A DNA stretch of 64,000 nucleotides, from the sequence record MH494197.1, one strand, 5' to 3'. The notes beneath the pieces are model-generated. The model saw only the letters and a list, made by a program, of their open reading frames with translations. It was not told the origin of the DNA and did no database searches. Shown in pieces: positions 3,828-44,238 of this stretch. The position numbers were made by a program, and so were the translations under genes. How positions within the stretch are numbered: the first letter of the stretch is position 1; the number at the start of each line of letters is the position of its first letter.

Positions 3828-4274
3828 TTATTTCCACCAAGTTGTATCACGACCACCAGACAAAGATTCATTGTACTGATGCCTGAAATTAGTATTTGGA
3901 TTATTTGTCATTGTACTAATAAAATCAAATTTAACATTCTCTTGAATGTAATTAATAACATTATCTTTAAATTTAATAGTACTGAAATCTAAATCCAAAT
4001 GTTCATACAATACCGGATGACAAAACTCATGTGTACGCAACGATGGCATGGTATCCTTAATGTATTGCACAGTGTTAATCATTGCATTGTATTCAGGCAT
4101 AGCACGCATCATCATTAGCTGAAAGTGTTCTTCCTCTGACATTGACTCATCCAAATCAATAACGACTTCATCATTTTTAGAGTCATATACTTTAATGGAA
4201 CTCTTGGTTGGATCAAGCATAGCCCACTCTGGATACAGGCATGTTTTCCAAAAAGGATTATTGCACTGAAACAT
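3828..4274 (-). CDS. family A hypothetical protein
   Basis: motif SEEEHFQLM. Confidence 0.6.
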   Translation of the reverse strand: MFQCNNPFWKTCLYPEWAMLDPTKSSIKVYDSKNDEVVIDLDESMSEEEHFQLMMMRAMPEYNAMINTVQYIKDTMPSLRTHEFCHPVLYEHLDLDFSTIKFKDNVINYIQENVKFDFISTMTNNPNTNFRHQYNESLSGGRDTTWWK

Positions 4275-4518
4275 ACTAATTAGATTTTGATTTTTATCAA
4301 AATAGCAAACCCAAGATCCGAACTTGGCTGTACTTCACATACACAAATATCATAAGGAGTCTTCAGTACTGAATGAACCAACTACATTTGATATATGTGA
4401 ATATGGAGTTTCTCTTGATTTTAATTCAAAGGCTCTCTCCATACGATTAACCTGTGGTTGTAATGTAATTACACCCCTCAGTACATATAAAATTCTATCT
4501 AAATCTTTAATCAAAATT

Positions 4519-4854
4519 CTATCCTCTTAGTTTAATAGTACTGGCTGGGTAATCTACCATAGTACTATCTGGTAATCCTATACAGTAATAAGGAAAATAT
4601 CCCATCATATTAATACCAATTAACATTCCTGTTTTATATGAAGTATTAATTTCATAGTGGTCGTCTATATCAACCGCCAGTCCATATAAGGATATGTTAC
4701 AATCCTTGATGTATCGTTCAAAGATTTTATACATTGATGGGTATACAGTTCCATTGGATTCTCTCACTACATCAGCCAACAACTTTATAGTACTGTTAAT
4801 CAAATCTATACTAATCATCTTTGTACTGAAAAGACCAGCAAACGCTGGCCTCAA
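4519..4854 (-). CDS. hypothetical protein
   Basis: 111-aa ORF in tight operon spacing. Confidence 0.5.
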   Translation of the reverse strand: MRPAFAGLFSTKMISIDLINSTIKLLADVVRESNGTVYPSMYKIFERYIKDCNISLYGLAVDIDDHYEINTSYKTGMLIGINMMGYFPYYCIGLPDSTMVDYPASTIKLRG

Positions 4855-4857
4855 AAT

Positions 4858-5139
4858 TTAAATTATTTCATATAGACAATATACACCATCAACGCCATCA
4901 CAAGGAAAATCAACATAGAAATTCACACTAACAGTATCATAATCAATCTCAGTGATGCGTCCGGTTTTACCTACACTCTTCACGAATAGGTCAGAGCCAA
5001 GATATACAAACTCAAACTCATCTGCATACTCTTTTATAATATCAGCAAAATCACAACCATATCTGGGATCAGTATTAATAATCTCAAGATATAATGTAAT
5101 GTATTGTTCGTATGACCATGTGTGTAGGTAAAAATCCAT
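4858..5139 (-). CDS. hypothetical protein
   Basis: 93-aa ORF with AGGAA RBS. Confidence 0.55.
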   Translation of the reverse strand: MDFYLHTWSYEQYITLYLEIINTDPRYGCDFADIIKEYADEFEFVYLGSDLFVKSVGKTGRITEIDYDTVSVNFYVDFPCDGVDGVYCLYEII

Positions 5140-5148
5140 AACAGTTCC

Positions 5149-5886
5149 TTAGAAATATACCATACCCATCAATTCTGAATCTTCAGGGCGAGTATAGCCT
5201 TGTTTCTTAACTTTAAAGTAGAAGGATTCATTGTCTTCTAAATTATAACGTTTCTTCAAGCAACGGGTATATGTCTGGCAATTAGGATGAACCCATTCAT
5301 ATATATGAACACCATCTTCATTATAACCATTTATACTACAACGGTTGCCTTCATGTTTCTTGTAGTTCTTGCTTTTCTCGGTAAATTCTTTTACAGCAGT
5401 AGTACTTGGTGATTTATATTCAAAAGGAACTTCAGTCATACGGAAATAATAATATTGATCGTCTTCATCATATCCCAAGAGCACTGTGTTAGTTTCACGT
5501 ACATTGTAATGATTCTTACTTTTCAATTCATTTTCATATATATCTTGAAGTACTTCTTCAAATACTGTAGTACTGTCAGCATTTGGGTTGGATACACCTG
5601 ATACTCTTCGTTCAATAATAAAATCAGTATATTTGCGGTCTTCTGCAATGTCTTCATTCATATAAAGACTAACGAACTTATCCTTGTACGTCTTTACACT
5701 GTATTGTTTACTTTGAACTTCGCTATATACATCTGCTAACATATTCTCCTGACCGCACTGCACACCACTTACAGAATAAGCACATGCATGTTCAGCCATT
5801 ACTGATGTTAACATTTGAAAATTTGCCATGTTTAATTCATTCGCCATCTCTGTAGCGAAACGGATACGGTCAAGCACTTTACACAC
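5149..5886 (-). CDS. hypothetical protein
   Basis: 245-aa ORF with AAGGAG RBS. Confidence 0.65.
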   Translation of the reverse strand: MCKVLDRIRFATEMANELNMANFQMLTSVMAEHACAYSVSGVQCGQENMLADVYSEVQSKQYSVKTYKDKFVSLYMNEDIAEDRKYTDFIIERRVSGVSNPNADSTTVFEEVLQDIYENELKSKNHYNVRETNTVLLGYDEDDQYYYFRMTEVPFEYKSPSTTAVKEFTEKSKNYKKHEGNRCSINGYNEDGVHIYEWVHPNCQTYTRCLKKRYNLEDNESFYFKVKKQGYTRPEDSELMGMVYF

Positions 5887-10772: not shown

Positions 10773-11174
10773 TTATAGACAGTTAAGTACTATGTCATCA
10801 AAAGTACTACTGTCAATGTTGTATTCATATAAAAATTTAAAATGTGATCCATAACGCATCATCAGATTAAACTCTTCTTCAGTATTAAATTTGTAATCAT
10901 GAAGAGTTTCAAGGGTACATGTTAAACCTAAAAACTCAATAATTTCTGATGTTACATCATTTCCTGAATTGAAGTATTTAACCCAAACACATTTTCCTTG
11001 TGGGTTGAATTTTCTATATTCTCCTTCTAGTTCTCCATTGACGATATGTGCTTTCGCACTGATTAGATTATTACTATAACGCTCTTCGTAGTAGTTCCCA
11101 TAACGAGCTTTAAGAATTGTAGGCTTCTTGGTTGGGAATAACTTAATGGAAGTTAATTCAAAACCGCACTGCAA
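10773..11174 (-). CDS. hypothetical protein with one MORN-variant-like repeat; true start probably 11311
   Basis: NGELEGEYRKFNPQGK segment; weak family A-like TEEEFNLMM. Confidence 0.45.
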   Translation of the reverse strand: MQCGFELTSIKLFPTKKPTILKARYGNYYEERYSNNLISAKAHIVNGELEGEYRKFNPQGKCVWVKYFNSGNDVTSEIIEFLGLTCTLETLHDYKFNTEEEFNLMMRYGSHFKFLYEYNIDSSTFDDIVLNCL

Positions 11175-15556: not shown

Positions 15557-16015
15557 TCAATACTGCTTGCGGTACGTCATTTTGTTGTATGCAGTGGTTA
15601 GTTTTTCCATGTTATTGAGAAGACTTAGAAACAATGGAAGTACTTCTGCATTGTCACTGAAGTTACAATCATTGACAGTACTCAATTGGAATAACTCACC
15701 AGCATCAACATTGAGTGTGTTGTATTCTTTAACAATGTTTTCTTCAGTATTGAAGATGTAGAATACAGTCCCCATGTGGTGTAAGTATACACCAGTATCA
15801 TTCTGAATATGACATGGGGTGATTACAATTGCTGTGTTATCAATATTATTTACTATTGTCAAACGCAGACTATGTAACCCAAAGATTACAGTACAATCCT
15901 TTGTACTGTGTTGGATCTGGTCACTAGTAAAGGAAGACCCACTATGATTTTTAGATCCATTTAGTATTTCTTTGATAATTTTAAATGAATACTTCATAGA
16001 ATTAGTTAAAAGCAT
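15557..16015 (-). CDS. family A hypothetical protein
   Basis: motif DAGELFQLSTV. Confidence 0.65.
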   Translation of the reverse strand: MLLTNSMKYSFKIIKEILNGSKNHSGSSFTSDQIQHSTKDCTVIFGLHSLRLTIVNNIDNTAIVITPCHIQNDTGVYLHHMGTVFYIFNTEENIVKEYNTLNVDAGELFQLSTVNDCNFSDNAEVLPLFLSLLNNMEKLTTAYNKMTYRKQY

Positions 16016-16911
16016 GAACTTTACCTTTAAGTAAATTAATTAATGTTCGCATAGATTCAGTACTGACAGTACCAAAATCAACACCTAAGCACTCGTATTG
16101 AAAGAACTCAATAGAATCAATTGAGTCCAAAGGAATCTCAACAACCTGATTCCCTATACCAGACATAGTAACATTGCTTTTATTAATCGTCAAGAAGTTT
16201 TTGAATAAGTATTAAATTTTAGTGAAATCGCATCGGGTGCTTTGTAACAATGCAGTACTGGGAGCCATACACATATAGTACTTTACTTTCACTAAGATCC
16301 GTTTTAAAAAATGAATCCCATTGAAGTATTTCTCATTGGCTCCCATCGCCGCGATTAGTTCATCTGTTGTTGTTAACCTTGTTTCGTTCTTCGTTAAACT
16401 GTTGAAAAGCATAGAATACTACCTTAACCATTTGTAGTGTTTCAGACATTACTTCTGATGAAAATTCAACATCATTGAATTTCAGCATAGTGTTCTGTGT
16501 AAAGAAAGTTGCTTCTAAGTCTTCCAGATTGAAGGGTTCATCAAACAAATTAGTACTGAACATGTCAGTCTTCTTCTTGTATGTGAACAAGAATTTGGAA
16601 TTATAACGAAGAACTATTTCATCTTTATTAACCAAAATACGTGCAATGTTCTGACGTGTCAATGTGGTAATGTTTAAATTGAACACGTTCTTGCGTGTTT
16701 CAGTGATATCAACAAAATACCCATCTCCTGATGGATATTACATCGTACATCCAACCCTTTCTGTACTGTATTGAACAGTGCATCTTGAATAAAATAATTT
16801 GCTGTATCGATGTTTCCTAAAATGTCTAACATAACTTCTCCTTGATTGCTGTCATATTTAGAAGAAATTCTTCAAGCAATTCCTCTGTAACATACTCAAC
16901 ATACCAGAATA

Positions 16912-17343
16912 TCACAATATCTTTGAAAGTCGAGTATTCTTAAAAATATCTACTAACTCTTTGTAGTACTCAAGATCATATACATCTTTTATAATTAGTG
17001 AGTACTGAAATAGTGATTCTTCAGTTAACTTAAATTCTGGATATAGTAAGTCATTAAATTCTAATGATTCTGATTGTACTTTTATTTTAGTGAAGTCATT
17101 TGTTAATCCACCATTATATCCATATAATGCAGCGTAATTCACGAACTTGGCTTTTGGATTAAAATCAAGAACAGTTTCACCTTTATATGACAATCGGTGG
17201 AACGCCGTGAACTTTGTAATTTGCCACGGTTGCTTAATGCCTAAGTCATTTATGTCTTTATTATTGTACATAAGAACTGTGAATATTTCAGCAATCTTCA
17301 ATAATAATTTAGTACGTGCTAGTACTGTCATAGGTTCAATCAT
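16912..17343 (-). CDS. family A hypothetical protein
   Basis: motif TEESLFQYSLI. Confidence 0.65.
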   Translation of the reverse strand: MIEPMTVLARTKLLLKIAEIFTVLMYNNKDINDLGIKQPWQITKFTAFHRLSYKGETVLDFNPKAKFVNYAALYGYNGGLTNDFTKIKVQSESLEFNDLLYPEFKLTEESLFQYSLIIKDVYDLEYYKELVDIFKNTRLSKIL

Positions 17344-30298: not shown

Positions 30299-30382
30299 TT
30301 TTTCTGGACTCCATATATATCACCTGATTTAGTTCATATACATAATCTAAATCAATGAATATAGAATTATTAAAGTTCTCTT

Positions 30383-30734: not shown

Positions 30735-31109
30735 TTATATTTCAATCTCTATATATTTTTGGGTAATTAAGTAATCCCAGTAGTACTTCACATGTTTTTG
30801 TATCTCAAGTAAAGCATAAAAATTAATTCTCTTGTCCCATACAAGTGATTCCTGAAAAATAAATGATTCATGGTCATCTCTGTAATCACATTCAAGGAAG
30901 TCAGGAATATAATCACAATCGTGAAGATATTCAATCATTAAAGATTCATTACATCTTCTAACGGCAAGGTGCTGGAAATTATCATGATCGAAGAAATACA
31001 TTAAACTAATTGTACCGGAATGTACTGAATACTGTATAAGAATTTCATCGTTTGCCCTTATGTTCGGTACGTACATATTCATAATCCAAATAAAATCTTG
31101 TGCTATCAA
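30735..31109 (-). CDS. family A hypothetical protein
   Basis: motif DHESFIFQESLVW. Confidence 0.6.
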   Translation of the reverse strand: MIAQDFIWIMNMYVPNIRANDEILIQYSVHSGTISLMYFFDHDNFQHLAVRRCNESLMIEYLHDCDYIPDFLECDYRDDHESFIFQESLVWDKRINFYALLEIQKHVKYYWDYLITQKYIEIEI

Positions 31110-31227
31110 TACTTTTAAAGTACCACATAATAACTAAAGTATCTAGTACTTCATCATCATACAAAGTACTATTCTGAAAGTAATACTCTTCACTATCCCA
31201 CGGACCTTTCAGTACTTCAAAGTTCAA
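31045..31227 (-). CDS. family A protein, C-terminal part (gene probably starts MSLRSAL at ~31487)
   Basis: motif GPWDSEEYYFQNSTL. Confidence 0.6.
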   Translation of the reverse strand: MNFEVLKGPWDSEEYYFQNSTLYDDEVLDTLVIMWYFKSIDSTRFYLDYEYVRTEHKGKR

Positions 31228-31229
31228 TT

Positions 31230-31745
31230 TTAACGGTCTACTGCGATTATAAAACGGATTTCACCTCCATATGCATAACTAATAAATTCTGCATCTGGAT
31301 TGTATTGTGAAAAATCTGCTGGACTTTTGGAATTCAAACCAAGAATAACTGTAGTTGTAGCAAAATCACTATCCTTGTAGTAGTTACCATTCTCGGCTTT
31401 GTATACTTCTTCGAACTTCCCAGCCTTAATATCTTCAATATATGCCTGTAGTTCTTTTGCTTTATCAAGAGCACTTCGTAATGACATTATCTTCCCTACA
31501 GTATTCTCTACGTATTCATAATCGAAATAGAAACTACTAGAGCCAATACTTTTAAAGTACCACATAATTACAATAACATCTAATTCTTCTTCATTGTACA
31601 CAGTACTGTTCTGGAAGTAATATTCTTCACTATCCCACGGACCTTCCAGTACTGAATACGGAATGATTGTGTCATCATCATCGTAATCAGGGCTGTAAAT
31701 TATAATATCTTCATCTCTACAATAACTAATGTACTGATTGTACAT
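31230..31745 (-). CDS. family A protein; track ORF probably fuses two genes
   Basis: motif GPWDSEEYYFQNSTV followed by an internal MSLRSALDKAK start. Confidence 0.55.
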   Translation of the reverse strand: MYNQYISYCRDEDIIIYSPDYDDDDTIIPYSVLEGPWDSEEYYFQNSTVYNEEELDVIVIMWYFKSIGSSSFYFDYEYVENTVGKIMSLRSALDKAKELQAYIEDIKAGKFEEVYKAENGNYYKDSDFATTTVILGLNSKSPADFSQYNPDAEFISYAYGGEIRFIIAVDR

Positions 31746-31905
31746 ATGATATTCACAGTCATCAGTATCACCCGTATCAGTGTGTAGTACTAACGTTTCT
31801 GCACATATCTCTGACTCATCATAATCGTCGCGGTCTTTTACAAAAATTCAGTATCAGATGTTTTATACACACGGCACTGAACCTTCTTGTACCATAATCA
31901 TGTAA

Positions 31906-32103
31906 TCATGAATCTTCTTTGCTTCTTTCAATGCACTTTCTAATGACATTACTAATCCCTGTACTTAAATATTCACATGCTCCCCAGTCAAGGAAGAAGG
32001 GTTCAAAATTCAATTCCTTAAAGTACCACAAAACAACCAAGGAATCAAGCATTTCTTGGTTAAAAATAAGACTCTGTTGGAAGTAATACTCTTCAGTACC
32101 CAC
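31906..32103 (-). CDS. family A protein (fragment)
   Basis: motif GTEEYYFQQSLI. Confidence 0.6.
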   Translation of the reverse strand: MGTEEYYFQQSLIFNQEMLDSLVVLWYFKELNFEPFFLDWGACEYLSTGISNVIRKCIERSKEDS

Positions 32104-32363
32104 GGCCCATCAAGTACCCGAAGTCAACAGGTGTATTTGATGTGTCAAAAGTAATCTTAGTACGGAATATATACAAAGAAACTAGTATATTGACTACATG
32201 AAGAGTACTGTATAGTATTGTCTTTATCATGGCCCATAAGTAAAATATCATCAGAGTATGTCTTTATACCTGATAGATAATACTCATTACCAAATGCACT
32301 TACTTTATCACCATAGAAACCACTTTTATGTTATCGTGGAAGTGATGTATTTTGTGTGCCAGT

Positions 32364-32738
32364 TTAAGTGCACTTGCTAAACTCATATATCCTCTTTAAT
32401 AACTCGTAGTAGATCCAAGTCCAGATAGAAGCTAGGACAATCGGTATTATTAAAGTACCACAGAATGACAAGCTTGTCAAGCACATATTCCTCGTAGATA
32501 GTATTCTGCTGGAAGTAGAACTCTTCACTTCCCAGTCATTATCCAGTACTGAATACGGAAGATGTTTCTCTGCTGCACCAGTTATAATGTCAGTATATTG
32601 TATTAAAATATCAGCATCACGACAGAAGTACATGTAATTATCTTCCAGATTAACATCACACCCAGTGAGTGTTGTTTCAGAAGAATCTAAGTTTTCTTCG
32701 TACATGTGAATGTACTCACTACTGTCATCGTATATCAT
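32364..32738 (-). CDS. family A protein (frameshifted)
   Basis: motif EEFYFQQNT in the alternate frame at ~32500-32530. Confidence 0.5.
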   Translation of the reverse strand: MIYDDSSEYIHMYEENLDSSETTLTGCDVNLEDNYMYFCRDADILIQYTDIITGAAEKHLPYSVLDNDWEVKSSTSSRILSTRNMCLTSLSFCGTLIIPIVLASIWTWIYYELLKRIYEFSKCT

Positions 32739-33124
32739 TCGACAATAAGCTTTACCTTCCTTGAATAGATACCCATTGAGACGATTGAGTACTATTTCCT
32801 TTTACATAAATCAATTAACTTAGCAATTTCTAATGCTCTTGTAAAACTCATATCAACTCCTGTGTTGTGTCTTGATATAATCTCGGTACACCATGTGAAT
32901 ATTAGCTATATACAATTCACTAATATCATATGTACCGAAGTTCATGTCATTCCTAATGCTGTTGTTATGTCTAATATCAATTACGAATCGTCGAAGTATT
33001 GTATTCATGAATGATTCCATTTGTTCTTTTTATTCATAGCTTAAAACGATACCTATCTTTGAATCAGACTCTATACAGATTCTTCTATATTCTTTCATCT
33101 TCTGTTGGAGTTCAATTACTTCCT

Positions 33125-33448
33125 CTAGTGTACACAAGTACTTTTGTCAAATATTAATGACTCTTGAAATATTTCAGCCTCACCATGTACTGTTGTATAG
33201 TCTTTCATATTTTCTACAACTGTTCCTTTGGACTGATAATCAATGAAGCTAAAGTAAGCACCATTAAATTTAATGTACTGATCCATTTTGTGTTCATAAT
33301 CACCTTTGTTAAGATTGCAATACACTTCTAGCGAAGTACTAATCTTAGGTATAAACATAGAAAAATCATATTCCATATTACTCACCTGTATTGAAATAAT
33401 AATTACTTGTTGTTGGTGTAGATGTATCAAAGGTGTTTTCTTTAACAT
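33125..33448 (-). CDS. family A protein (CNLxKGD subfamily); likely start 33378
   Basis: YCNLNKGD and GEAEIFQESLIFDK. Confidence 0.65.
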   Translation of the reverse strand: MLKKTPLIHLHQQQVIIISIQVSNMEYDFSMFIPKISTSLEVYCNLNKGDYEHKMDQYIKFNGAYFSFIDYQSKGTVVENMKDYTTVHGEAEIFQESLIFDKSTCVH

Positions 33449-33743
33449 ATCTCTTCATTTCATTTTGTATAAAAATCATATCTTCTATTGTACATGAGTA
33501 CTTATTCTTGTCAAACACCAAAGAAGCTTGAAATAGTTCAGCATTATCTAGTACTGTATAATCTGTAATACTTTCAGAGTTATAGTCGAAGTCATCATGT
33601 AATACATCAATGAAATTAAAACACAAATCGGAGTACTGAATATATAAACTCAACTCATGTTCCGAATCACCCTTGATAAGATTACAGCATAAATCCCATC
33701 CTGTTCTGGACCTGCAAACGTACATTGAATAATCATATGTCAT
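33378..33743 (-). CDS. family A protein (CNLxKGD subfamily)
   Basis: CCNLIKGD and DNAELFQASLVFDK. Confidence 0.7.
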   Translation of the reverse strand: MTYDYSMYVCRSRTGWDLCCNLIKGDSEHELSLYIQYSDLCFNFIDVLHDDFDYNSESITDYTVLDNAELFQASLVFDKNKYSCTIEDMIFIQNEMKRYVKENTFDTSTPTTSNYYFNTGE

Positions 33744-34099
33744 TATGTAATTCCTATATTGAATTTGTATTCTTGATTAATACTTACATTGGATGTATTC
33801 AAAGCAGCATACTCTTTCATTTCATTTTGTATAGCAATTACTTCTTCTAGTGTACACAAGTACTTCTTATCAAATACTAATGCAGCTTGGAATAGTTCAG
33901 CGGCATCCATTACTGTATAATCCGGCATATCTTGATGTGGATACTGTAATGAATCGTAATCAATAAATGTAAATTTACCCTGAGTGTAATGAATATACTC
34001 ATTTGCACTGTGCATTAAATCACCTTTGTTTAAATTACAAAAGTACTGAAAACTGTTCTTAAAAGAATGTACTGATATTACAAAATCAAATTCCATCAC
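33743..34099 (-). CDS. family A protein (CNLxKGD subfamily)
   Basis: FCNLNKGD and DAAELFQAALVFDK. Confidence 0.7.
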   Translation of the reverse strand: MMEFDFVISVHSFKNSFQYFCNLNKGDLMHSANEYIHYTQGKFTFIDYDSLQYPHQDMPDYTVMDAAELFQAALVFDKKYLCTLEEVIAIQNEMKEYAALNTSNVSINQEYKFNIGIT

Positions 34100-35230
34100 T
34101 CTTCCCTAGATTGAAATGATTACTAAAATTAGTTTCACCAGTTTTACACCATTTATCTATACATTCCCTGTGAATGCATTTAATTCTACGCTGGATTTCA
34201 ACAATCTCTTCTAATGTACAGATGTACTTTTGTCAAATACTAATGACTCCTGAAATAGTGCAGCATCATCCATTAAGGTATAGTCCAGCATATCGGTTGC
34301 TTTACAACTAAATCCAGTACCAAGATCCATTAAATAAAATTGTGAATTCCAGAACTTTATAACCTTGCCCTTGTGTAGTTTAAATCACCTTTGTACAAAT
34401 TACAACACGTAATCAACTCACCCGTGTACATCCATGTCCCTATACAAAATTCTTTATATTTTATTTCCATCTTAATCTCTACTGTAATTAATAAGGTAAA
34501 CTCCAATATAAGGAGCACGTTGGGGCGGGGTATTTTTGTTTCAGGAAACATGAACTGTACTCTGAAAACACATTTTAAAACTTTATATTAAACATATACC
34601 TTAACATGTTTTTCAGCGAAAATTTTTTGACCCCAGCGGCCTGTGAAAATGAAACGTCTCTATTTATTCAGCCTAGAAAGCTTGATTTCTTCAATCCTTT
34701 TCATCGCACAAAGCCTTCGACTCGTCCTCTCGTACATATTCAATACTCGCTGTAATGCATTATCTGTATTATCTGAACTGCAATCTGAACCAAATATGTA
34801 TCCTTCAAAATCGAATCCATCATGAATTCAAAACCTTTCACACTAAAGCAATATACCACTTCCGGCTCTTCAAACGTAATCATAATTCCAATCTGTCCCA
34901 TCTAACCTTCTAAGATATCTTGCGTAAATTATTTCGAAATATCTGTGCAACGAAATTACGGATTGCTCATAATCATCATTCCTGTACATTGTGCATGTAA
35001 GAAAATCATTTAAACCGTAATCTAAACTGCACTTGAACTTCTCCTTTGCAACATCTCTAAAATTATCCATAATATGTCCTCTGCACAGCGTAGGTGTACT
35101 GTGAACTCAGCACCGTTAATAGGTAATCTATATTGTAAGCACGATTTCCTCGTTGACTAGCACGACTAGAATAAAGAATATTATCCACATATGTATTGAA
35201 CTGTTCTTCAAATAACTCTTTCATCAGCAC

Positions 35231-35260
35231 CCTTTAACAACCTTTAACAACCTTTAACAA
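35231..35260. repeat. perfect tandem repeat (CCTTTAACAA)x3
   Basis: three exact 10-mers spanning the stop codon of 35244..35600. Confidence 0.9.
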
Positions 35261-35600
35261 CTTTTGAAATGTAATCTTCTAATACACCAATGTTCTTTGT
35301 ATTCGTTCGAACTAAAAGATAACTTAAATTCTCGAACTCCTGAACATAATGCTTAACAGCGTACATGCATCGTAATTCAAAATCTGTATGAACCGTTTTG
35401 TACTGAAATAACATCTCTTCTGATGCATCTAAAAGCTCTGTAGCTTGTTCTGTACTGAACTTAAAGGGATTCTGTACTCCTGAACTAAAACACTTTTGTA
35501 CGTTCGTCTGGACACCCTGTGATAGATATAATCCTGTACTACCATCTTGTGTTGATATCGAATTGAAACCATTACTTGCAACCATTAAATCTGAACTCAA
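35244..35600 (-). CDS. family A hypothetical protein
   Basis: motif SEEMLFQYKTV. Confidence 0.6.
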   Translation of the reverse strand: MSSDLMVASNGFNSISTQDGSTGLYLSQGVQTNVQKCFSSGVQNPFKFSTEQATELLDASEEMLFQYKTVHTDFELRCMYAVKHYVQEFENLSYLLVRTNTKNIGVLEDYISKVVKGC

Positions 35601-35806
35601 TACAAATAATAATTTATCTTCCTTATGAATTAATAAATCTGACTTCAGGATTTTATTCCTGTACTGGTTATATCACCTATACTAAGATTGTCACTGAACT
35701 TCTCAGCGTTGTTCGCAATGCTCTGGACAAGATTTTTAATCTCTTAATGGCACTTCTGTCTTTTTCTAATGTATCTAATAAACTCATTGAACTCATTGTA
35801 CTTTCC

Positions 35807-36151
35807 TTACATATTTGTACCGAACAAAACGGAACTTTGAATACCATTAATCGACACTTCATGTACATATATATTTTGTCTGAATACCTGAAGCAATTGA
35901 ACTAAACTTTGTTGCATAATAATATGCATCGCTACATTATCAAAGGCCGTTTCGTATTGGAATCGTGCAGCTTCATCTTCTATTAAATTCGGAACTTGGA
36001 CTGGATTCTCAAAATTTGTCCTTGTACTGAACTGTACATCATTGTCCTGTACCTTAATACCATATGAATTATCATTGTTATCAACTACATCAAATTCAAT
36101 TAAACTACCATCTTTACTGACGTTCACTATATACACTGAAAATCTACTCAT
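35807..36151 (-). CDS. family A hypothetical protein
   Basis: motif DEAARFQYETA. Confidence 0.6.
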   Translation of the reverse strand: MSRFSVYIVNVSKDGSLIEFDVVDNNDNSYGIKVQDNDVQFSTRTNFENPVQVPNLIEDEAARFQYETAFDNVAMHIIMQQSLVQLLQVFRQNIYVHEVSINGIQSSVLFGTNM

Positions 36152-36194
36152 AATCCTATTTCCTTTAAATCTTCCAAAAATGTTTCATAATCAC

Positions 36195-36464
36195 TTAAGG
36201 AAAAAAGATATCCGTATCGATGTTCGCATCTAATACATTATACAAATTCTGCATCTGTAACACATCAGGAGCATCAATCAATGATTGCTGGAAATAGGCA
36301 GCTTCATCTTCTAAAATATCCCTGAATGTTCTCTCTCGTACTCTGTGGTGTACTGAATTGAATATTGATTTCTCATCCTTAAGCATTGGTAGGTATCGAA
36401 TGTACATGTGTTCTCTTAGCTCAGGACTGATGGAACCCTGAACTGTAACACGTATTCGAAGCAC
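36195..36464 (-). CDS. family A hypothetical protein (C-terminal part)
   Basis: motif DEAAYFQQSLI. Confidence 0.6.
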   Translation of the reverse strand: MLRIRVTVQGSISPELREHMYIRYLPMLKDEKSIFNSVHHRVRERTFRDILEDEAAYFQQSLIDAPDVLQMQNLYNVLDANIDTDIFFP

Positions 36465-36876
36465 ATAGCAACATCCTGAAGGTAATTGGCACTGTAATTA
36501 TTGCTGTAAACAATCTTATGACTTCTGAACTCATCATCATTTCTGAACCAATTGTCACCTACTTTGGTGTACTTATGACTAAGCAATCCACCCTCTAACG
36601 CTTTGATGATCTTCAAAATGTTGTGTGCAAATGCATATGATGTATTGTACTTGGCCTGATACATGTGTGCCTCATCTGCCTCATTTGGCGTTAAAATATT
36701 CACTGAAATGATTATAACACAAAAGCACCACTATGTTAAGCACTCTGTTGTCAAAATCATCTTGTGATGCAGGATGCAAGGACGCATTGATGTTAAAATT
36801 CACTATATCATTGTGGAATTGGTATGTGAACAAATCAAACTTCGTATGCCTTTGTTTGATATCATAGGCGGTCATA

Positions 36877-37080
36877 TTATATATTCAACCCTTTAACAAT
36901 GGAAATAAATTCTTTGTATACATTTTCAGGTAAAGCTTTACTACCATAAAGAATACTAAATTCAGGTAACATATCCGAAATCTCTTTCGCTAAATTTATT
37001 TCATCCCTGAACATTTGCACAGGCATGATATCCTGTACCAATGATAACTGAAAGAAAAATGATTCAATATCTTCATGCAC
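36877..37080 (-). CDS. family A hypothetical protein (fragment)
   Basis: motif IESFFFQLSLV. Confidence 0.55.
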   Translation of the reverse strand: MHEDIESFFFQLSLVQDIMPVQMFRDEINLAKEISDMLPEFSILYGSKALPENVYKEFISIVKGLNI

Positions 37081-37478
37081 CTCTGAATTTAAATAAATCT
37101 CTTCTGGAAACTGGGCTGTACTGTAATAATAAAATACATCAATTCTTTTTCATTATTTTGTACAAGAGGTAAATTTCTTTCGTCTCTCTTATTAATATTT
37201 GTTTTCCATGACTCAATGTTATTCGGAATCCAAAACTCATAAGGTGTCTTCTCCTGAAATATTATCCAGCTTCAATCCATAATATTCACCTTCTCCGTAC
37301 TTTTGCTTCAAAACAATACCTGTACTACTAATGTTTACAATGTACGTATCAACAATCCCTTCTGTGCTAAAAGGAATATTTAACTCTGAACCTTCAGGGT
37401 ACTTAGCATTGAATGCATCTAATGCTTTACTTAGCACTGGGATTGCACTGGTACTGTACTTCATTAATTGGTCTATGA

Positions 37479-37853
37479 TCATTTTAATTCTGTAATCACT
37501 GCATTTACTGCACTTGATGCAAATAAACTGATATTTGAACGATACATATCGTACACTGTACTTTCTTTCTTGTGCACAATGAAATCATAAAGATCAACGA
37601 ATGCAGGAATAATAATCTTGAATGATTTATTTGGGTACGTCCCAAAATCAACTGTACTCAATTTTGCAACGAGCATAACAACAAAGATTTCTTCTGGACT
37701 ATGCAATGTACTGTACTGAAAATATTCCTCAGCACTCATGGCACTTATTGCATTTATATCTTGTGTTTGTAATGTAATATTAAGATATTCAAAAATAGAA
37801 TAAAACTCTGATTTTGTTTGTATTTTGTATTTGTCAATTGGGGTATCTCTCAT
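37479..37853 (-). CDS. family A hypothetical protein
   Basis: motif SAEEYFQYSTL. Confidence 0.65.
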   Translation of the reverse strand: MRDTPIDKYKIQTKSEFYSIFEYLNITLQTQDINAISAMSAEEYFQYSTLHSPEEIFVVMLVAKLSTVDFGTYPNKSFKIIIPAFVDLYDFIVHKKESTVYDMYRSNISLFASSAVNAVITELK

Positions 37854-38120
37854 GAACCATAAACGATCTTGTCCATAAAAGGAATGATTGAATTTGGGGA
37901 AGCCAGAAATACTTCTTCACTATCAATATCCTTTAACTCAATTTGCATACCGGATGAATTGGCAATAATTAATTCATTAAAAATATAATGAACCTTGTGT
38001 ACAATCTCTTGTACTGAATTGAAATCATCTGGTATTTTAAAATTTTCCATAGGTATCTCCTTAAAATGATTACACATTGTACCATGCATTTGTACTCGTG
38101 TCAAACAAAAAGCCCATATC

Positions 38121-38618
38121 TTACGATACAGGCATGTTTATTTGAATTTCATTGTACAAATCATCAATATATAGACATGAAAACGATAAACTTTCTTTAA
38201 CTATATTGTTGTGATAAAGCATTTTAAATGCAATATAGAAAAATAAATCAATATCATCATGTACTAAATTCTGCTGGAACCACCACTCTTCTGTTAAATC
38301 TTGTGCATTAAAATCATCAGGAACTACAATTGACGACATATCAGCATCTTCTTTGTACTCAAACCACATGTCGTCATTTGGATAACGTTCATGCTTCTCT
38401 GGGTAACAATTGCTGGGATTAAATGCTAAAATATAAAATGCCGTCGCAGAATGTTCTTTATTATAAAATGAATTATTCCACACCTGATACCTTTCACCAA
38501 CATCAAACTCTTTTGATACTGATGTTATTGCACATAATGTACGATATATTGTTTCTATTTTGTGAACAAATTTAAAGGCTGCATCTAAACTGAACTCTAA
38601 ATCAGACATGCGGTGCAT
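38121..38618 (-). CDS. family A hypothetical protein
   Basis: motif TEEWWFQQNLV. Confidence 0.6.
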   Translation of the reverse strand: MHRMSDLEFSLDAAFKFVHKIETIYRTLCAITSVSKEFDVGERYQVWNNSFYNKEHSATAFYILAFNPSNCYPEKHERYPNDDMWFEYKEDADMSSIVVPDDFNAQDLTEEWWFQQNLVHDDIDLFFYIAFKMLYHNNIVKESLSFSCLYIDDLYNEIQINMPVS

Positions 38619-39042
38619 AAAATTACCTCAACTAAAATAAGAACGGTATTGAATTCGAGGCAACCTTTGATACCTTGATTGTACATGTACTTTGCTACTA
38701 CATATTTCTGTACTAAATTATAATTATTAAATTCCTCAAAATTGTAATTTAGAATGAAATTTGTACTCAAAAATAACTTATGCATCTCTAATGCACTCTG
38801 ATAATATTTGTACAACTCACTGATATCAATACTTTGTAAATCACTTTGTTCATATGTATGATAAGGAATGGCGTCAATATCAATATTATTAAACCATTCT
38901 CTTAACTTATTAATATCAAATGTATTATTCAGCTTCATAACTCAATACCTCCATTAAGCACTCATAAACACCATCAATCGCATAAGCACAAAACTGAAAT
39001 TAATTTTGTTATTCTTGTGTAATGGACTATCGTGTACTGTAC

Positions 39043-39336
39043 TCAACATAACACTATAAAACAAAGAACGTTCATGTGTAAATAATGATTCCTGAAAAAT
39101 GCTTCCTCTGATTTAATTTTATTATATTCAATCGATTGATCATTAGAATAAAATGAATCTTGATTTGAATTGTACCATGTGTAATCCAAATCATTCTTTG
39201 ATATAACTGGTGTTGGATTAAACTGTAAAAGACTAATAACACTACGGGCATTTGGGGTATCAGGTGTATTGAATCGTTTATCAAAATGACTCGTGCACGC
39301 AATATGTGAATCAAAATCAGATGGTTTAAACCCCAT
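39043..39336 (-). CDS. family A hypothetical protein (frameshifted)
   Basis: adding one T to a T-run restores EEAFFQESLF. Confidence 0.5.
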   Translation of the reverse strand: MGFKPSDFDSHIACTSHFDKRFNTPDTPNARSVISLLQFNPTPVISKNDLDYTWYNSNQDSFYSNDQSIEYNKIKSEEAFFRNHYLHMNVLCFIVLC

Positions 39337-39480
39337 GAATGCGTTAATGATTCTTGTATATGGTTTTTATTATGTGCTGCTTTCTGTACATTATATAAGG
39401 CTGCAACAATACAAGCTAACTTTTGTCCCATAAGGATTGCATTAGCGTAGGTGTACTGAATTTCATTGTACTCATTGCTT

Positions 39481-39690
39481 TCATTGTACTTCGAGATCAT
39501 GGAACAGCCTCACTTTGCCTAACTCGTCATTGGATATTAATTCGTTAACAGCTTTTTGTATATTCTTTAATAATAGCACATCAAATCCTTTTGTGTCAAG
39601 CACACATTGCATTTGGAAGAATTCTTCTTCTGATAATGTATTAAAATCCACAAAATTGTCTAATATTACGTCATTATCCAAATGTGCCAT
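39481..39690 (-). CDS. family A protein, paralog of 39818..40129 (true start ~39795)
   Basis: DFNTLSEEEFFQMQ shared with the neighbouring gene. Confidence 0.7.
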   Translation of the reverse strand: MAHLDNDVILDNFVDFNTLSEEEFFQMQCVLDTKGFDVLLLKNIQKAVNELISNDELGKVRLFHDLEVQ

Positions 39691-39817
39691 GTGCCATGTA
39701 TTTCTTTCGAGCGTTTAATAAAATTCCATCCATCTGGATAATCGGGTTCTAATTCTACATATATCCCCGATACTGTATAAAGCATTTTATATATCATAAC
39801 TATTGTACTCATTGTTT

Positions 39818-40129
39818 TCACTGTACGTCGATGTCATAATACGCTCCTACCTCATAATCTTTCTTGCTTTGGAATTCATTAACGACTTTCTGTATATTTC
39901 TTAATGTTACCATGTCATGTCCGTACATGTCAACCACCAATTGCATTTGGAAAAATTCTTCTTCAGATAATGTATTAAAATCTATAAAATAATCCGTAAC
40001 AACCTGTGCGTCTAAATTTGCCATGTACCATTGATTGGTATCGACCTCTTTAACCAAATTCCATGCATCTGGATCGGATTCTAATTCTACATATATTAAT
40101 GTTAATGTATAAAGCATTTTATACTTCAT
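39818..40129 (-). CDS. family A protein
   Basis: MKYKMLYT start; DFNTLSEEEFFQMQLV. Confidence 0.7.
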   Translation of the reverse strand: MKYKMLYTLTLIYVELESDPDAWNLVKEVDTNQWYMANLDAQVVTDYFIDFNTLSEEEFFQMQLVVDMYGHDMVTLRNIQKVVNEFQSKKDYEVGAYYDIDVQ

Positions 40130-40463
40130 AACTATATCCTTGCATTAATAAATCATAAACGTTTGAAAGGTGCGGAATTTTGATATAAAATTTAAAACCC
40201 TTAATTAAAGGATTCGCGTACAATGAACTGAATAACTTTAGATAATGTATTTGACGAGGACTGTATAATAACGATTTCTGAAATAATTCAGCACTACAAT
40301 CTGAACTAATATCAATTAAATCAATTCGTGCTTCTACTTCATCATCTTGTTTCAAAACATAAAAGAAATAATCGTTTGTGTTGACCCACAAATACCCTTC
40401 ACTATTTTCGTATATAACAGGAGATGCTTGTTCTGGATTGCCTTGGCAAATGCTGCAAAACAA
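40119..40463 (-). CDS. family A protein, paralog of 40700..41014
   Basis: EGYLW, AELFQKSLLY, C-terminus YDLLMQGYSYEV. Confidence 0.7.
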   Translation of the reverse strand: MFCSICQGNPEQASPVIYENSEGYLWVNTNDYFFYVLKQDDEVEARIDLIDISSDCSAELFQKSLLYSPRQIHYLKLFSSLYANPLIKGFKFYIKIPHLSNVYDLLMQGYSYEV

Positions 40464-40699
40464 ACTTTTGCATTACTTTCATCTTTAAACATAAACGATA
40501 ATTTATCATATCTATCTTCTATGCGTAAATCACCTATAAAATGTACTTATGCATAGAATGATTATTCTTGAGCATAAGCATTACTGTACTAATCTTGTGT
40601 GCTAATAATTCTATCTCATTCATATATTATTACCTATTGATTGATACATCGTCATTGTCTTCTAATTCAACATAAATCATATCTTTTGTATAAAGCATT

Positions 40700-41014
40700 T
40701 TATACTTCATAACTATATCCTTGCATTAAAAGATCATAAGCAATATCAACTAATTCTAAACGAATGAAAAATTTTAAATTATCTTTCAATGGATTCAAAT
40801 GCATTGTACTAAACAACATAAGATACTTCATTTGATTTGTATTGTATATTAGGGATGTCTGGAATACTTCTGCTTCATTGTAAGGATCAATGAATTTTAT
40901 ACCTTCTTCACTGTAATCCGTTTTGGAATTCTGATATATAAAATAATCATCACCAGCATTGTACCACAAATAACCTTCAAAACTGGAATCAAATTCTGAA
41001 TTTTCATTTCGCAT
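40700..41014 (-). CDS. family A protein
   Basis: EGYLW, AEVFQTSLIY, C-terminus YDLLMQGYSYEV. Confidence 0.7.
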   Translation of the reverse strand: MRNENSEFDSSFEGYLWYNAGDDYFIYQNSKTDYSEEGIKFIDPYNEAEVFQTSLIYNTNQMKYLMLFSTMHLNPLKDNLKFFIRLELVDIAYDLLMQGYSYEV

Positions 41015-41964
41015 TAAAGGTGATACTGAAATTGGATTTGAACCAACTGTTGCACAAACCTCAATGAAAGCATCTTCATTTCCTTAACTTCTTCTTTGAT
41101 TTTATCATTGTACTGACCTGCAAAACCAGCTTTCACTTCCAAATATAAACTACTCCCAACTTTATTAATTCTTAAAAGGGAACTCTGTACTGTATTCGCA
41201 TTGTTCAGCACTAACGATATTGTGCAAATCTTATGTACCAATAACTCAATATCATTCATATTGGTATTCCTTAATTTGGTGGATTTGGATGTAATAACTG
41301 ATCTATATAATTTAAATGTTCTATTGTAACTAATGAAAGATAATAATTGTAATTATCTATACCACCCTTTAAATGTATATTGTAATACATCTTGATACTT
41401 ACTAATAAAGAATCATTTAAATCATTTATTGCTTTTGTATTAACGGTTTTCATTAATGTTCTTCTCTTAAAAACGCTTAATGGCACAATCTAAATAAAAA
41501 TCATAATACATCATATCTCTATTCTTAACCCATACACAATAATCTGCATTAATATTTCTTAATAATATATTCATATTATAATCTTCACACCCTAATCGTG
41601 CCATTTAATAGGATACTCCGTTCCATTTATTGTATAAGATATAATCCATCCGTAATGAATAGGATGATTTTTGTCTGAATCAGGAATAAAATATAAAGAT
41701 GTACTGGGTTATAACTGAATAAATCGTTGTTACCAATTGTAAAATGTGATAACTCAATCTTCCTTGTACCTGTACTTGGACGAAGAACATTCTTAACACC
41801 GAAGACTGTACCTTGATATTTCTCGGAAAATTCAAACAATGCATCTGCAATTAAATCACGAAACTCCGCATGTATGGTTTCAAAAAATCTATATTACACG
41901 ATGTTTTAATATCCTTGAACTCCTTATATAAAGAGCTTCTTGTATTCAAAAGAAATATTACTTT

Positions 41965-42165
41965 TTAAGATCCTGAACTATTTCTGGATTCATATTCATT
42001 TATCTCATTCTGTAACTTAAGCATCAAAATTTGCATATTAATTTTTTGTACAAGGTGATTGAGAAATTTCTGTACTGTATCTTCTTGTTCTTTTGACCCA
42101 AGATAAAATAACATATTAAATTCCGATAACCTCAGAGCAAAATCTTCCTCTCCCCTCGTAAACAA
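41965..42165 (-). CDS. family B small protein
   Basis: LFYLGSKEQED. Confidence 0.6.
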   Translation of the reverse strand: MFTRGEEDFALRLSEFNMLFYLGSKEQEDTVQKFLNHLVQKINMQILMLKLQNEINEYESRNSSGS

Positions 42166-42199
42166 AAATCCCTGTACTTTGAAGCGTACAAATATTGGT

Positions 42200-42412
42200 T
42201 TACCTTTTTATACCTTTGGGTCTGCATTGTATCTCCTTTTTCAAACACCTTATTAGATTATCAACGTATTGGTCCTGTACTATTGTCCCTAGATAAAATA
42301 ATACATCGAACTCTGATAATTTTATATTGAAAGGATCTACATATACATCTTTAATAAACTCTTTGTACTTCAAAATATATGCATTAGGTAAATTCTTATA
42401 TATCGATTTCAA
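42200..42412 (-). CDS. family B small protein
   Basis: LFYLGTIVQDQYV. Confidence 0.65.
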   Translation of the reverse strand: MKSIYKNLPNAYILKYKEFIKDVYVDPFNIKLSEFDVLFYLGTIVQDQYVDNLIRCLKKEIQCRPKGIKR

Positions 42413-42626
42413 TGATCCTCCCTGACATACCTTGTATTAGCTTATCATACATATCTAGCATTACTTTTTGAATACTAATTAATACTGGCATCGTGCAAAT
42501 ATCAATGTCGTATATTAAGCTGTACTGGAATAATTCCTCTTCCTGCATTTGTACTAAATTAGGTAAAAGATAATTGTCTGCCTCTTCATCCGGTACTTGA
42601 ATGCATAACGCCATCCTTTTGTACAA
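42396..42626 (-). CDS. family A protein (C-terminal part)
   Basis: QEEELFQYSLI. Confidence 0.6.
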   Translation of the reverse strand: MYKRMALCIQVPDEEADNYLLPNLVQMQEEELFQYSLIYDIDICTMPVLISIQKVMLDMYDKLIQGMSGRIIEIDI

Positions 42627-42712
42627 AAGAATGTCAATATCACCTAACTCTTCTGCATAACCAAAAATACATATACTGATGTTTTTGCTATATTAAATTT
42701 CATATTCTTCTC

Positions 42713-43063
42713 TTATATGTGGAATTCACATACGTGTTGAACAAAATTCTTTGGAAGATGACAATGTGTAATCATCTGCTTTTGTACTTCCTTCATATCT
42801 TCGAATGTAAATCCTAAAGAATCATCATGTACTAACAAGTACTGAAACTCTTCTTCTTCAGAGATAGAACATAAATTCGGTACTGAAATTGTGTTTGTTT
42901 TTCTTGCACCTAATTTCCAATGAAAAGAATTATTGCATTTTCTGTACTCAAATATCTTCAACCCAGAACCTGTATTAAAATCAGCTACTACAATGTAACA
43001 TGAATTCTTACGTACAATACAATTGAACTTACGCATTATCTCCACCTCTCTCCGTCTGTACAA
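42713..43063 (-). CDS. family A protein
   Basis: SEEEEFQYLLVH. Confidence 0.6.
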   Translation of the reverse strand: MYRRREVEIMRKFNCIVRKNSCYIVVADFNTGSGLKIFEYRKCNNSFHWKLGARKTNTISVPNLCSISEEEEFQYLLVHDDSLGFTFEDMKEVQKQMITHCHLPKNFVQHVCEFHI

Positions 43064-43340
43064 GAGTACTGGTACGTTGTAGTTAGGGTAGGGACCATGT
43101 TTGTAATGGGCATATTATTAACAATAACGGTAACAGGCATAAGAATCGTCTCTTCTCTACTCTGTCCTGTCCTTGTGCAATTCATCTTTTGCATTTCATC
43201 GGACTCCATGAAATACAATACAAATGGTGCAATCCCAAGAACAATACACAAGACGATAAGGAAATTTAAAAATTCAACATAATTTTCTACCCTATGATTA
43301 ACGTACAGGTACTATATCAGTAATGAAAAGTACTGTCAAG

Positions 43341-43715
43341 CTAGTATTGCACTGTTCTAATGAAAGTACCTTTACTCATGGATTTAAGCTTATGAACCTC
43401 TTCCTGCATACCCTTAATTAACCCTAAAGGTATAGGTAAATCATGTACTAAGCTGTACTGAAAGTATTCTTCTTCAGATAAAGTACTAACATCTGGAATG
43501 CCAATTTTAGTTAGATAATCTTGATGTGTTGACCAATAAATTATATCTTCAGTACTATTGTACTCCCCATATACTGAACAATATTGATGAATATCTTTCC
43601 TGTACCCTTGAGCAATAAAGAACTTATCTACTGCATTACCAGCATTAATAGAATTCACTTCGATTGTCACAGTACTTGAGCTTGTTTTTCCTTTACTATG
43701 CATATTAATCCCCAA
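43341..43715 (-). CDS. family A protein
   Basis: LSEEEYFQYSLVH. Confidence 0.65.
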   Translation of the reverse strand: MGINMHSKGKTSSSTVTIEVNSINAGNAVDKFFIAQGYRKDIHQYCSVYGEYNSTEDIIYWSTHQDYLTKIGIPDVSTLSEEEYFQYSLVHDLPIPLGLIKGMQEEVHKLKSMSKGTFIRTVQY

Positions 43716-43891
43716 ATTAGATATCGAACACTATCAGCTTGATAGTTAGTTCCTACTGTGTGTTTTAATATTAACTCATCTTTCAGTACTGAACATTCTG
43801 CATTAGATATAGGAAGAGAATTAATTCTTTGAATTTCTGGTCGCAAAATACCGCGAAGCTTGCGGTAATCTTCGTATGATAATATTTTCAT
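43667..43891 (-). CDS. family B small protein
   Basis: HTVGTNYQ. Confidence 0.65.
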   Translation of the reverse strand: MKILSYEDYRKLRGILRPEIQRINSLPISNAECSVLKDELILKHTVGTNYQADSVRYLIWGLICIVKEKQAQVL

Positions 43892-44238
43892 TGTTTAGTA
43901 CTCAATAATGTGTTCTTCATAATCACCATTAGGCTCTGTTTAGCTTCTTTCATTAGTACTATCATTTTATGTACTAATGGCATAGGAAATTCTAAATCCC
44001 ATACTAATGATTCTTGAAAGTATTCCTCTGGTGATAAAGTACTTAAATCTTTAATATCAACGTGCTTGTATATTTTATTTTCGTAATTAACAAATGATAT
44101 ATATAAATCATTAATATAAGAATCATACGTAATTGTGAATGGCTTACCCTTGTAGTCCATTACATCTCTACATAGACTACTTTTGATATATATATGTTCA
44201 TAGGATTTATATACCTTGAGTTGTATATTAGTTTTCAT
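43888..44238 (-). CDS. family A protein
   Basis: LSPEEYFQESLVW. Confidence 0.65.
   Translation of the reverse strand: MKTNIQLKVYKSYEHIYIKSSLCRDVMDYKGKPFTITYDSYINDLYISFVNYENKIYKHVDIKDLSTLSPEEYFQESLVWDLEFPMPLVHKMIVLMKEAKQSLMVIMKNTLLSTKQ

Follow-up and report, generated by a model that had tools for sequence, protein, structure and literature searches.

A tandem array of divergent small proteins with a common EExxFQxS motif in the jumbo phage CMSTMSU and its relatives

We describe a family of small proteins, hereafter family A, encoded within a window of 64,000 nucleotides from sequence record MH494197.1, the window being the whole stretch of DNA analysed. It corresponds to positions 62001-126000 (100% identity) of CMSTMSU, an Escherichia phage of the genus Asteriusvirus with a 386-kb genome (a 121Q/PBECO4-like jumbo myovirus; record flagged UNVERIFIED_ORG). 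Members of family A have minus-strand genes, mostly in a single tandem array, and have in common the motif (S/T)EExxFQxS(L/T)(V/I)(aromatic)D, the rest of their sequences showing a mean column identity of 12%. The explanation that we favour, and to which we give about an even chance of being right, is that these ca. 45 paralogues form a lineage-specific family with one alpha/beta fold, in which the motif is a core helix, and that they act as early, non-virion binders. The protein family is undescribed, while its general kind, i.e., lineage-specific multigene expansions in giant viruses, is known.

The motif and the array in intact genomes

The regular expression [ED][ED]..FQ has 30 matches over the three minus-strand frames and none in the plus frames; in minus-strand stop-to-stop segments, it yields 29 matches against a mean of 0.73 and a maximum of 4 over 200 residue shuffles. 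We started a hidden Markov model (HMM) of the motif with 11 strict seeds and iterated it over the window (E<0.01) until it settled at 38 copies, every one of them on the minus strand (core motifs 16990-44034); each of 20 sets of shuffled open reading frame (ORF) segments gave 0–1 matches. The shuffling control proposed along with the original prediction thus rules out a chance origin of the motif. Nine more copies are weaker or degenerate, including those at 4107-4136 (ORF 3828-4274) and, devoid of FQ, at 10854-10883 (ORF 10773-11174), and one copy near 30002 has been destroyed by a frameshift, so that the window holds about 44–48 copies in total. The count of at least 44 given in the original prediction is therefore fair, and its three hand-read copies (near 19690, 26220 and 34250) are all among the 38; the weak copy that it placed at 10773 is indeed present, but only in degenerate, non-significant form.

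Among the 38 copies, F and Q are invariant, S is found at +3 in 30, E at -4 in 28 and at -3 in 26, while position +2 is variable. The invariant residues are encoded by either synonymous codon (TTT 22/TTC 16 for F; CAG 23/CAA 15 for Q), and Ser by both AGY and TCN codons. Since synonymous codons vary freely at these positions, the conservation lies at the protein level, and the explanation of the motif as a DNA repeat can be ruled out. The array and the motif copies are given below, each copy with its sequence and, where available, its E-value against the motif HMM.

16829..44280, minus strand, main family-A tandem array of about 40 genes, fragmented here, intact in WPEC3 (L002:11384-40450)
16990..17025, minus strand, motif TEESLFQYSLII, E=6.5e-06
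17920..17955, minus strand, motif MEERLFQESCVS, E=7.3e-07
19081..19116, minus strand, motif SEEQHFQLSTIH, E=7.3e-12
19665..19700, minus strand, motif GEEQYFQLSTIH, E=1.6e-09 (hand-read copy near 19690)
20192..20227, minus strand, motif IEENEFQNNTLS, E=8.7e-09
21139..21174, minus strand, motif VDEELFQMSTVI, E=2.1e-05
22909..22944, minus strand, motif TDEVQFQLSTIC, E=3.2e-10
24509..24544, minus strand, motif SEESYFQNSLIY, E=5.6e-16
25030..25065, minus strand, motif DPDELFQYSLVL, E=1.8e-03
25369..25404, minus strand, motif SEEELFQESTVN, E=2.4e-14
25711..25746, minus strand, motif TEEMYFQGSCIH, motif HMM, in the intact 160-amino-acid gene 25588-26070 (long member modelled below)
26202..26237, minus strand, motif SEEEFFQYSTLY, E=3.0e-14 (hand-read copy near 26220)
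26734..26769, minus strand, motif NEENYFQQSLLN, E=1.9e-13
27270..27305, minus strand, motif DRGELFQESLVL, motif HMM, in the intact 112-amino-acid gene 27141-27479
27610..27645, minus strand, motif QEDELFQESLVW, E=3.1e-15
28605..28640, minus strand, motif TEENIFQNSLMW, E=1.5e-14
30428..30463, minus strand, motif SEDAYFQYSTIY, E=1.5e-08
30837..30872, minus strand, motif HESFIFQESLVW, E=2.5e-07
31159..31194, minus strand, motif SEEYYFQNSTLY, E=2.0e-18
31596..31631, minus strand, motif SEEYYFQNSTVY, E=2.1e-16
32062..32097, minus strand, motif TEEYYFQQSLIF, E=1.9e-11
32494..32529, minus strand, motif SEEFYFQQNTIY, E=3.0e-15
33149..33184, minus strand, motif GEAEIFQESLIF, E=1.6e-06
33513..33548, minus strand, motif DNAELFQASLVF, motif HMM, in the intact 121-amino-acid gene 33378-33743 (short member modelled below)
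33872..33907, minus strand, motif DAAELFQAALVF, E=1.5e-11
34235..34270, minus strand, motif DDAALFQESLVF, E=4.3e-07 (hand-read copy near 34250)
35388..35423, minus strand, motif SEEMLFQYKTVH, E=2.4e-09
36273..36308, minus strand, motif DEAAYFQQSLID, E=5.6e-03
37701..37736, minus strand, motif SAEEYFQYSTLH, E=1.4e-09
38259..38294, minus strand, motif TEEWWFQQNLVH, motif HMM, in the intact 165-amino-acid gene 38121-38618
39598..39633, minus strand, motif SEEEFFQMQCVL, E=6.3e-13
39932..39967, minus strand, motif SEEEFFQMQLVV, motif HMM, in the intact 103-amino-acid gene 39818-40129
40263..40298, minus strand, motif CSAELFQKSLLY, E=2.5e-06
40844..40879, minus strand, motif NEAEVFQTSLIY, E=5.9e-08
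42510..42545, minus strand, motif QEEELFQYSLIY, E=3.6e-15
42827..42862, minus strand, motif SEEEEFQYLLVH, motif HMM, in the intact gene 42713-43036
43443..43478, minus strand, motif SEEEYFQYSLVH, motif HMM, in the intact gene 43341-43703
43999..44034, minus strand, motif SPEEYFQESLVW, E=4.4e-16
4107..4136, minus strand, outlying weak copy EEEHFQLMMM (ORF 3828-4274)
10854..10883, minus strand, degenerate copy TEEEFNLMMR (ORF 10773-11174)
15674..15703, minus strand, weak copy AGELFQLSTV, E=0.015 here and 0.0017 in the WPEC3 orthologue
21707..21736, minus strand, degenerate copy EAYIFQRSVL; candidate WPEC3 counterpart by position L002:17440-18024, weak against the long profile (E 1.5e-3)
23479..23508, minus strand, degenerate copy ESVMFQHMLI; WPEC3 orthologue L002:19186-19743, 6e-16 against the long full-length profile
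29444..29473, minus strand, degenerate copy EEQCFQLSCT, by regular expression only
37036..37065, minus strand, weak copy ESFFFQLSLV, E=0.53

Gene-level analyses required other genomes than CMSTMSU. The window is 97.8% identical to the genome of phage WPEC3, from which it differs (window 4216-48934) by 172 deletions of one or two bases versus a single one-base insertion, 75% of them within homopolymers, and only 8 of the 37 family-A genes that could be mapped are intact. Judging from this comparison, frameshift errors pervade the CMSTMSU assembly, and the fragmentation of its family-A genes is an assembly artefact; the deposited annotation, with its many coding sequences of 40–80 amino acids, is unreliable, and the record is unfit for gene-level inference. 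Because of these homopolymer deletions, most ORFs behind the original prediction were fragments, and therefore its impression of unrelated N-termini was inflated and its distances to the C-terminus were distorted. In what follows, intact gene models come from the relatives WPEC3 (L002), 121Q (L004), phAPEC6 (L006) and RaK2 (L003), with no stop codon read through. In intact WPEC3 proteins, the F of the motif lies 40–81 amino acids from the C-terminus (median 51); the range of 30–60 first proposed was partly artefactual.

WPEC3 encodes 42 motif-bearing proteins of 103–212 amino acids, tightly packed on one strand over about 29 kb, often with overlapping stop and start codons, and two further array genes with degenerate motifs were recovered by a full-length profile, bringing the total to 42–44. 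There are also 42 members in phAPEC6 (gp379c and gp404c-gp466c), among which gp379c, located at the end of the syntenic region that corresponds to ORF 3828-4274, passes the motif HMM, as well as 29 members within 20 kb in 121Q and at least 28 within 40 kb in the Klebsiella phage RaK2. Hence, the constant module in very divergent small proteins reported in the original prediction stands, and so does the large extent of the array. Moreover, family A behaves as a tandem viral multigene family, with many same-strand paralogues in arrays that are conserved in 121Q, phAPEC6 and RaK2. Between RaK2 and WPEC3, 16 members are reciprocal best hits, of which six are collinear and four of these aligned over their full length; the expansion is therefore older than the split between Alcyoneusvirus and Asteriusvirus. 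According to the RaK2 paper, nearly 10% of the RaK2 gene products are paralogues, a remark that probably includes the family-A genes.

The ratio of nonsynonymous to synonymous substitution rates (dN/dS), pooled over orthologues of 121Q and WPEC3, amounts to 0.24 for the N-terminal parts, 0.20 for the C-terminal module and 0.26 for neighbouring genes. These sequence comparisons indicate that the paralogues are maintained under purifying selection, with no gross signal of positive selection, while the possibility of an array of pseudogenes or junk is ruled out by a dN/dS of about 0.2 and by the orthology across genera. When real members were used as tblastn queries, matches were obtained only in jumbo phages of Escherichia, Salmonella and Klebsiella; an HMM consensus used as query gave none, perhaps owing to the low-complexity filter. 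Family A appears confined to RaK2-like jumbo myoviruses (Asteriusvirus, Alcyoneusvirus). Family proteins also occur on 350-kb-range contigs that were submitted as assemblies of Escherichia coli (database hits P0025, P0167, P0168 and others); it seems that such bacterial records conceal entire jumbo-phage genomes, owing to a carrier state or to contamination. Finally, members are mostly acidic (median isoelectric point 4.86, median net charge -8), although the products of neighbouring genes are little less so (median isoelectric point 5.33).

Family A is also absent from curated resources as a named entity. Among 10 members, none exceeds a Pfam cut-off (best score 17.8 bits for a cut-off of 32.2) and none matches NCBIfam. 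One of the 10 gave a weak partial match to JAB/MPN (PADLOC PDLC00899; 18.1 bits, E=4e-4, positions 94-147 of 160), the other nine giving none, and this candidate was rejected, as there is no MPN fold according to Foldseek, no JAMM residues and no conserved His in the motif region. In PHROGs, 43 WPEC3 members match at E<1e-5, but they are spread over at least 25 families of unknown function (12 members in phrog_13866, 10 in phrog_12674, 9 in phrog_9317, phrog_15629 being another of these families); the product of gene 25588-26070, for instance, belongs to phrog_12674 (4.5e-60 over positions 1-157 of 160). PHROGs thus includes the same proteins, yet records no name, function, shared motif or array unity for them. 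Likewise, neither the family nor the motif is described in the literature on 121Q, PBECO4, RaK2, GAP32, CBB and Asteriusvirus or in jumbo-phage reviews and comparative genomics, in agreement with the original prediction, which had recognised no described family.

Predicted fold and relationships among members

Two intact members were modelled with AlphaFold2. The long one (25588-26070, 160 amino acids) has a predicted template modelling score (pTM) of 0.74 and a predicted local distance difference test score (pLDDT) of about 94 over residues 101-140; its model starts with a helix (8-24), a low-confidence acidic loop (27-66) and four strands (70-100), and goes on with a helix including the motif (110-116, EEMYFQG), a second helix (122-137), a strand (144-147) and a last helix (148-159). 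The short one (33378-33743, 121 amino acids; pLDDT 86.5, pTM 0.83) features five strands (5-59), the motif helix (67-76), which is the part predicted with the highest confidence (pLDDT 94–96), two further helices (79-82 and 86-102) and a strand (111-117). Common to both models is the order beta-sheet, motif helix, long helix, strand. In these predictions, the motif looks like the core helix of one compact alpha/beta domain and not like a detachable tag, as had been proposed at first, since it forms a high-confidence helix between the beta-sheet and the long helix in both cases. The S/T-E-E preceding it is compatible with N-capping and acidic N-terminal turns, and a buried core would suit the hydrophobic positions (-6, -1, F, +4 to +6); the conserved EE patch and the Q may form a common surface. 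Regarding structural relatives, Foldseek searches of both models against the PDB returned none (best E 3.0 and 0.63, template modelling score ≤0.28), and hmmsearch with profiles A1 and A3 against the PDB found nothing below E=0.79, while BFVD yielded only uncharacterised proteins of the same phage group and marginal matches in Eneladusvirus (E ~1e-2).

A common surface might also serve for docking. In the main alternative, a modified form of the docking idea of the original prediction that we consider unlikely, the motif and its acidic patch would attach all members to a single partner, be it host RNA polymerase, a chaperone or a Clp-type machine of the host or of the phage, and different clients would be picked by the rest of each paralogue, which varies, as in poxvirus ankyrin/PRANC or BTB-Kelch adaptors. 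The polar residues Q, E, E and S are invariant or nearly so, beyond the needs of a hydrophobic core, position +2 varies as expected of a surface-facing residue, and divergence outside the motif is extreme; moreover, the relatives encode a Clp-annotated protein, gp246c of phAPEC6. However, both models place the motif in a high-confidence helix that is integral to the domain, and not in a disordered or terminal peptide; S/T-E-E is also what plain capping of a helix start looks like, no other domain type was seen to carry the module, and it has no known partner. As for gp246c (762 amino acids, annotated as ATP-dependent Clp protease; phAPEC6 176659-178947, L005), it is a conceivable docking partner. 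That the FQ/EE surface delivers different host or defence proteins to one hub (a Clp-type unfoldase/protease or RNA polymerase) strikes us as improbable; if true, family A would amount to a phage-encoded combinatorial system for targeted inactivation, built on a fold without a solved relative.

Whether all members share their whole domain, as implied by the single-fold explanation, was assessed at the sequence level. By BLASTP, N-terminal parts match in 11 of 861 pairs and C-terminal parts in 68 of 861. Iterated HMMs delineate one 9-member long cluster in WPEC3, one 4-member short cluster and a few pairs, about 25 N-terminal regions of WPEC3 being singletons. On the other hand, the profile of the long subfamily (A1) retrieves 110 representatives among 1.84 billion proteins, nearly all of them 145–195 amino acids long and matched end to end, and located either on contigs of about 350 kb or in named jumbo coliphages. 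A profile restricted to the N-terminal region (90 A1 database relatives) recognises 31 of 97 N-terminal parts against 2 of 341 decoys, of which at least the WPEC3 one has a degenerate motif; long members are therefore homologous along their whole length. The dissimilarity of the N-terminal regions, noted in the original prediction, thus holds by BLASTP, yet profiles unite many long members over their full length. No profile-search hit is longer than 202 amino acids and, in the searches reporting Pfam annotation, no Pfam domain was found on homologues; in these sequence data, the motif module is not seen fused to other domain types.

The same results bear on domain shuffling, i.e., a mobile C-terminal module of about 50 amino acids recombined onto unrelated N-terminal domains. 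It is suggested by the contrast between N- and C-terminal BLASTP matches, by the many singleton N-terminal regions and by hhalign, which aligns the long and short subfamilies over the 17-residue motif alone (probability 83%). Nevertheless, the module keeps a constant relative position (40–81 amino acids from the C-terminus), the same element order surrounds the motif in both models, the N-terminal profile links a third of the N-terminal parts, and neither a lone module nor N-terminal domains without a trace of the motif were found, so that we hold shuffling to be improbable as well.

Expression, genomic context and proposed role

Matches of at least 11/12 to the sigma-70 promoter consensus are present in 5 of the 8 intergenic gaps of the array, four of the five having an extended -10 TG. 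Coding-strand sites scoring 10/12 or better show an enrichment of about 3.6-fold in gaps, which make up 5.6% of the sequence and hold 10 of the 50 sites. The sites with an extended -10 are as follows.

22712..22740, minus strand, 11/12 sigma-70 promoter with TG, in an intergenic gap, directly downstream of a terminator-like hairpin (22754-22773)
26576..26605, minus strand, perfect 12/12 sigma-70 promoter (TTGACA-18-TATAAT with TG), in an intergenic gap of the array
38076..38104, minus strand, 11/12 sigma-70 promoter with TG, in an intergenic gap
43311..43339, minus strand, 11/12 sigma-70 promoter with TG, in an intergenic gap

Upstream of the array, the minus strand of 51500-61100 carries 15 near-perfect sigma-70 promoters, 11 of which are 12/12 (TTGACA-16/17-TATAAT), in a repeat of about 90 nucleotides followed by a GGGGAGAA..TTCTCCCC hairpin. 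This segment has few ORFs and no Rfam or tRNA match, and it looks, from its sequence, like a battery of strong early promoters heading the leftward gene block. Every gene in the first 50 kb of the window is on the minus strand. More broadly, Rfam and tRNA scans of the window or its 3' part returned no matches, and the tRNA scan found no tRNA genes in the window. Another repeat, with core GCACCCTGTGGGC, occurs in 5 copies over 51645-62100, some of them within longer 90-nucleotide copies (families D8, D11-D13).

Two groups of neighbouring genes complete the picture. Directly upstream of family A lies a second tandem family of paralogues (about 44230-50160, minus strand; WPEC3 L002:40440-46849), in which 28 of 29 consecutive genes of 70–90 amino acids are linked by BLASTP, with an LGT(D/N)xQE motif. 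Just downstream of the array, genes for a polynucleotide kinase/3'-phosphatase and an RNA ligase (712-1485 and 2415-3566, minus strand) correspond to the T4-like tRNA-repair pair that counters anticodon nucleases, and in relatives, a Dam methylase and a cytidylyltransferase are encoded between this pair and the array. The T4 counterparts of the polynucleotide kinase, RNA ligase and Dam are early genes.

Jumbo phages package many small proteins, which speaks for a reading in which family-A proteins are carried in the virion and injected, the motif being a packaging signal, as the original prediction had envisaged. We deem this very unlikely, because sigma-70 promoters and early-type neighbours point to early and not late expression, and because mass spectrometry of phAPEC6 virions identified 62 proteins (PMC7247149) but none of the 42 members, although this method can miss small, low-copy proteins. 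Altogether, early, cytoplasmic and non-virion expression is the best-supported part of what we infer from these sequences. A processing signal, also envisaged at first, is the most far-fetched reading of all: the residue pattern alone (acidic P6, aromatic P3, Gln P1, a small residue nearby) recalls the sites cleaved after Q by 3C/NIa-type cysteine proteases, but such sites need an extended, accessible chain, while the motif is helical by prediction and better ordered than any other part of the two models, its Ser falls at P2' and not P1', and the relatives' annotations that we saw, in which no genome-wide search was made, list T4-type prohead and Clp-type proteases only. The T4-type prohead protease cleaves after Glu, and we know of no 3C/NIa-type enzyme in E. 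coli.

In the explanation that we favour, the motif would be a short N-capped helix at the centre of a domain made of a beta-meander, the motif helix, a long helix and a beta-strand; long members would have, in addition, a helix at the N-terminus and a variable acidic loop. F and neighbouring residues, as the buried hydrophobic part of the motif, would keep the fold together as the sheet and the loops diverge. Host sigma-70 RNA polymerase would transcribe the array early, and the proteins would be cytoplasmic, stoichiometric binders or inhibitors, each directed against a different host or anti-phage-defence protein. The array might then represent a host-takeover or counter-defence repertoire, with a logic akin to that of the multigene families of large eukaryotic DNA viruses.

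Several points weigh against this explanation. The models were built on shallow alignments (17 and 33 sequences), and the common fold of long and short members is suggested by the matching order of their secondary-structure elements alone, the two subfamilies aligning by hhalign over the motif only and about 25 N-terminal regions remaining singletons. Furthermore, the invariant polar residues Q, EE and S are not fully explained by a structural role. As for expression, promoter-like sites are not enriched over the whole region (98 found for 122 expected), promoter consensus is the sole ground for early timing, no transcriptome of this phage group was found in the literature, and no experimental or transcriptomic data on family-A genes were found in that on Asteriusvirus and Alcyoneusvirus. 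Finally, the binding or counter-defence function is purely what we infer, and an averaged dN/dS of about 0.2 gives no sign of an ongoing arms race.

Comparable systems and significance

Several known systems resemble family A in part. Paralogue expansions in giant phages likewise consist of large tandem sets of small proteins with no assigned role, but family A differs from them in having no zinc ribbon or other known domain. Among eukaryotic viruses, the multigene families (MGF) 110, 360 and 505 of African swine fever virus, the poxvirus Bcl-2-like proteins and the ankyrin/PRANC proteins are also tandem sets of very divergent paralogues in which a core or a C-terminal motif is conserved. These families are early and thought to act in counter-defence; their likeness to family A is one of logic only, with no relationship in sequence or fold, and the host of family A is a bacterium. 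Closer in setting, the DNA mimics T7 Ocr and T4 Arn are, as family A, small, acidic, early-type and non-virion, and encoded near anti-restriction or RNA-repair genes. However, inhibitors of this type are single genes, whereas family A has about 45 members and no fold similarity in the PDB.

At about 29 kb, the array takes up roughly 8% of a genome of 350–386 kb, and its ca. 45 genes are to be compared with some 750 in total. Its retention under purifying selection in two genera of giant enterobacterial phages implies that it must pay its way. From a practical perspective, a unified family with a diagnostic motif gives a starting point for the annotation of hundreds of "hypothetical proteins" from RaK2-like phages, and its members make up a defined set of candidates for host-takeover and counter-defence screens. 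They also constitute a natural series, with one scaffold and many surfaces.

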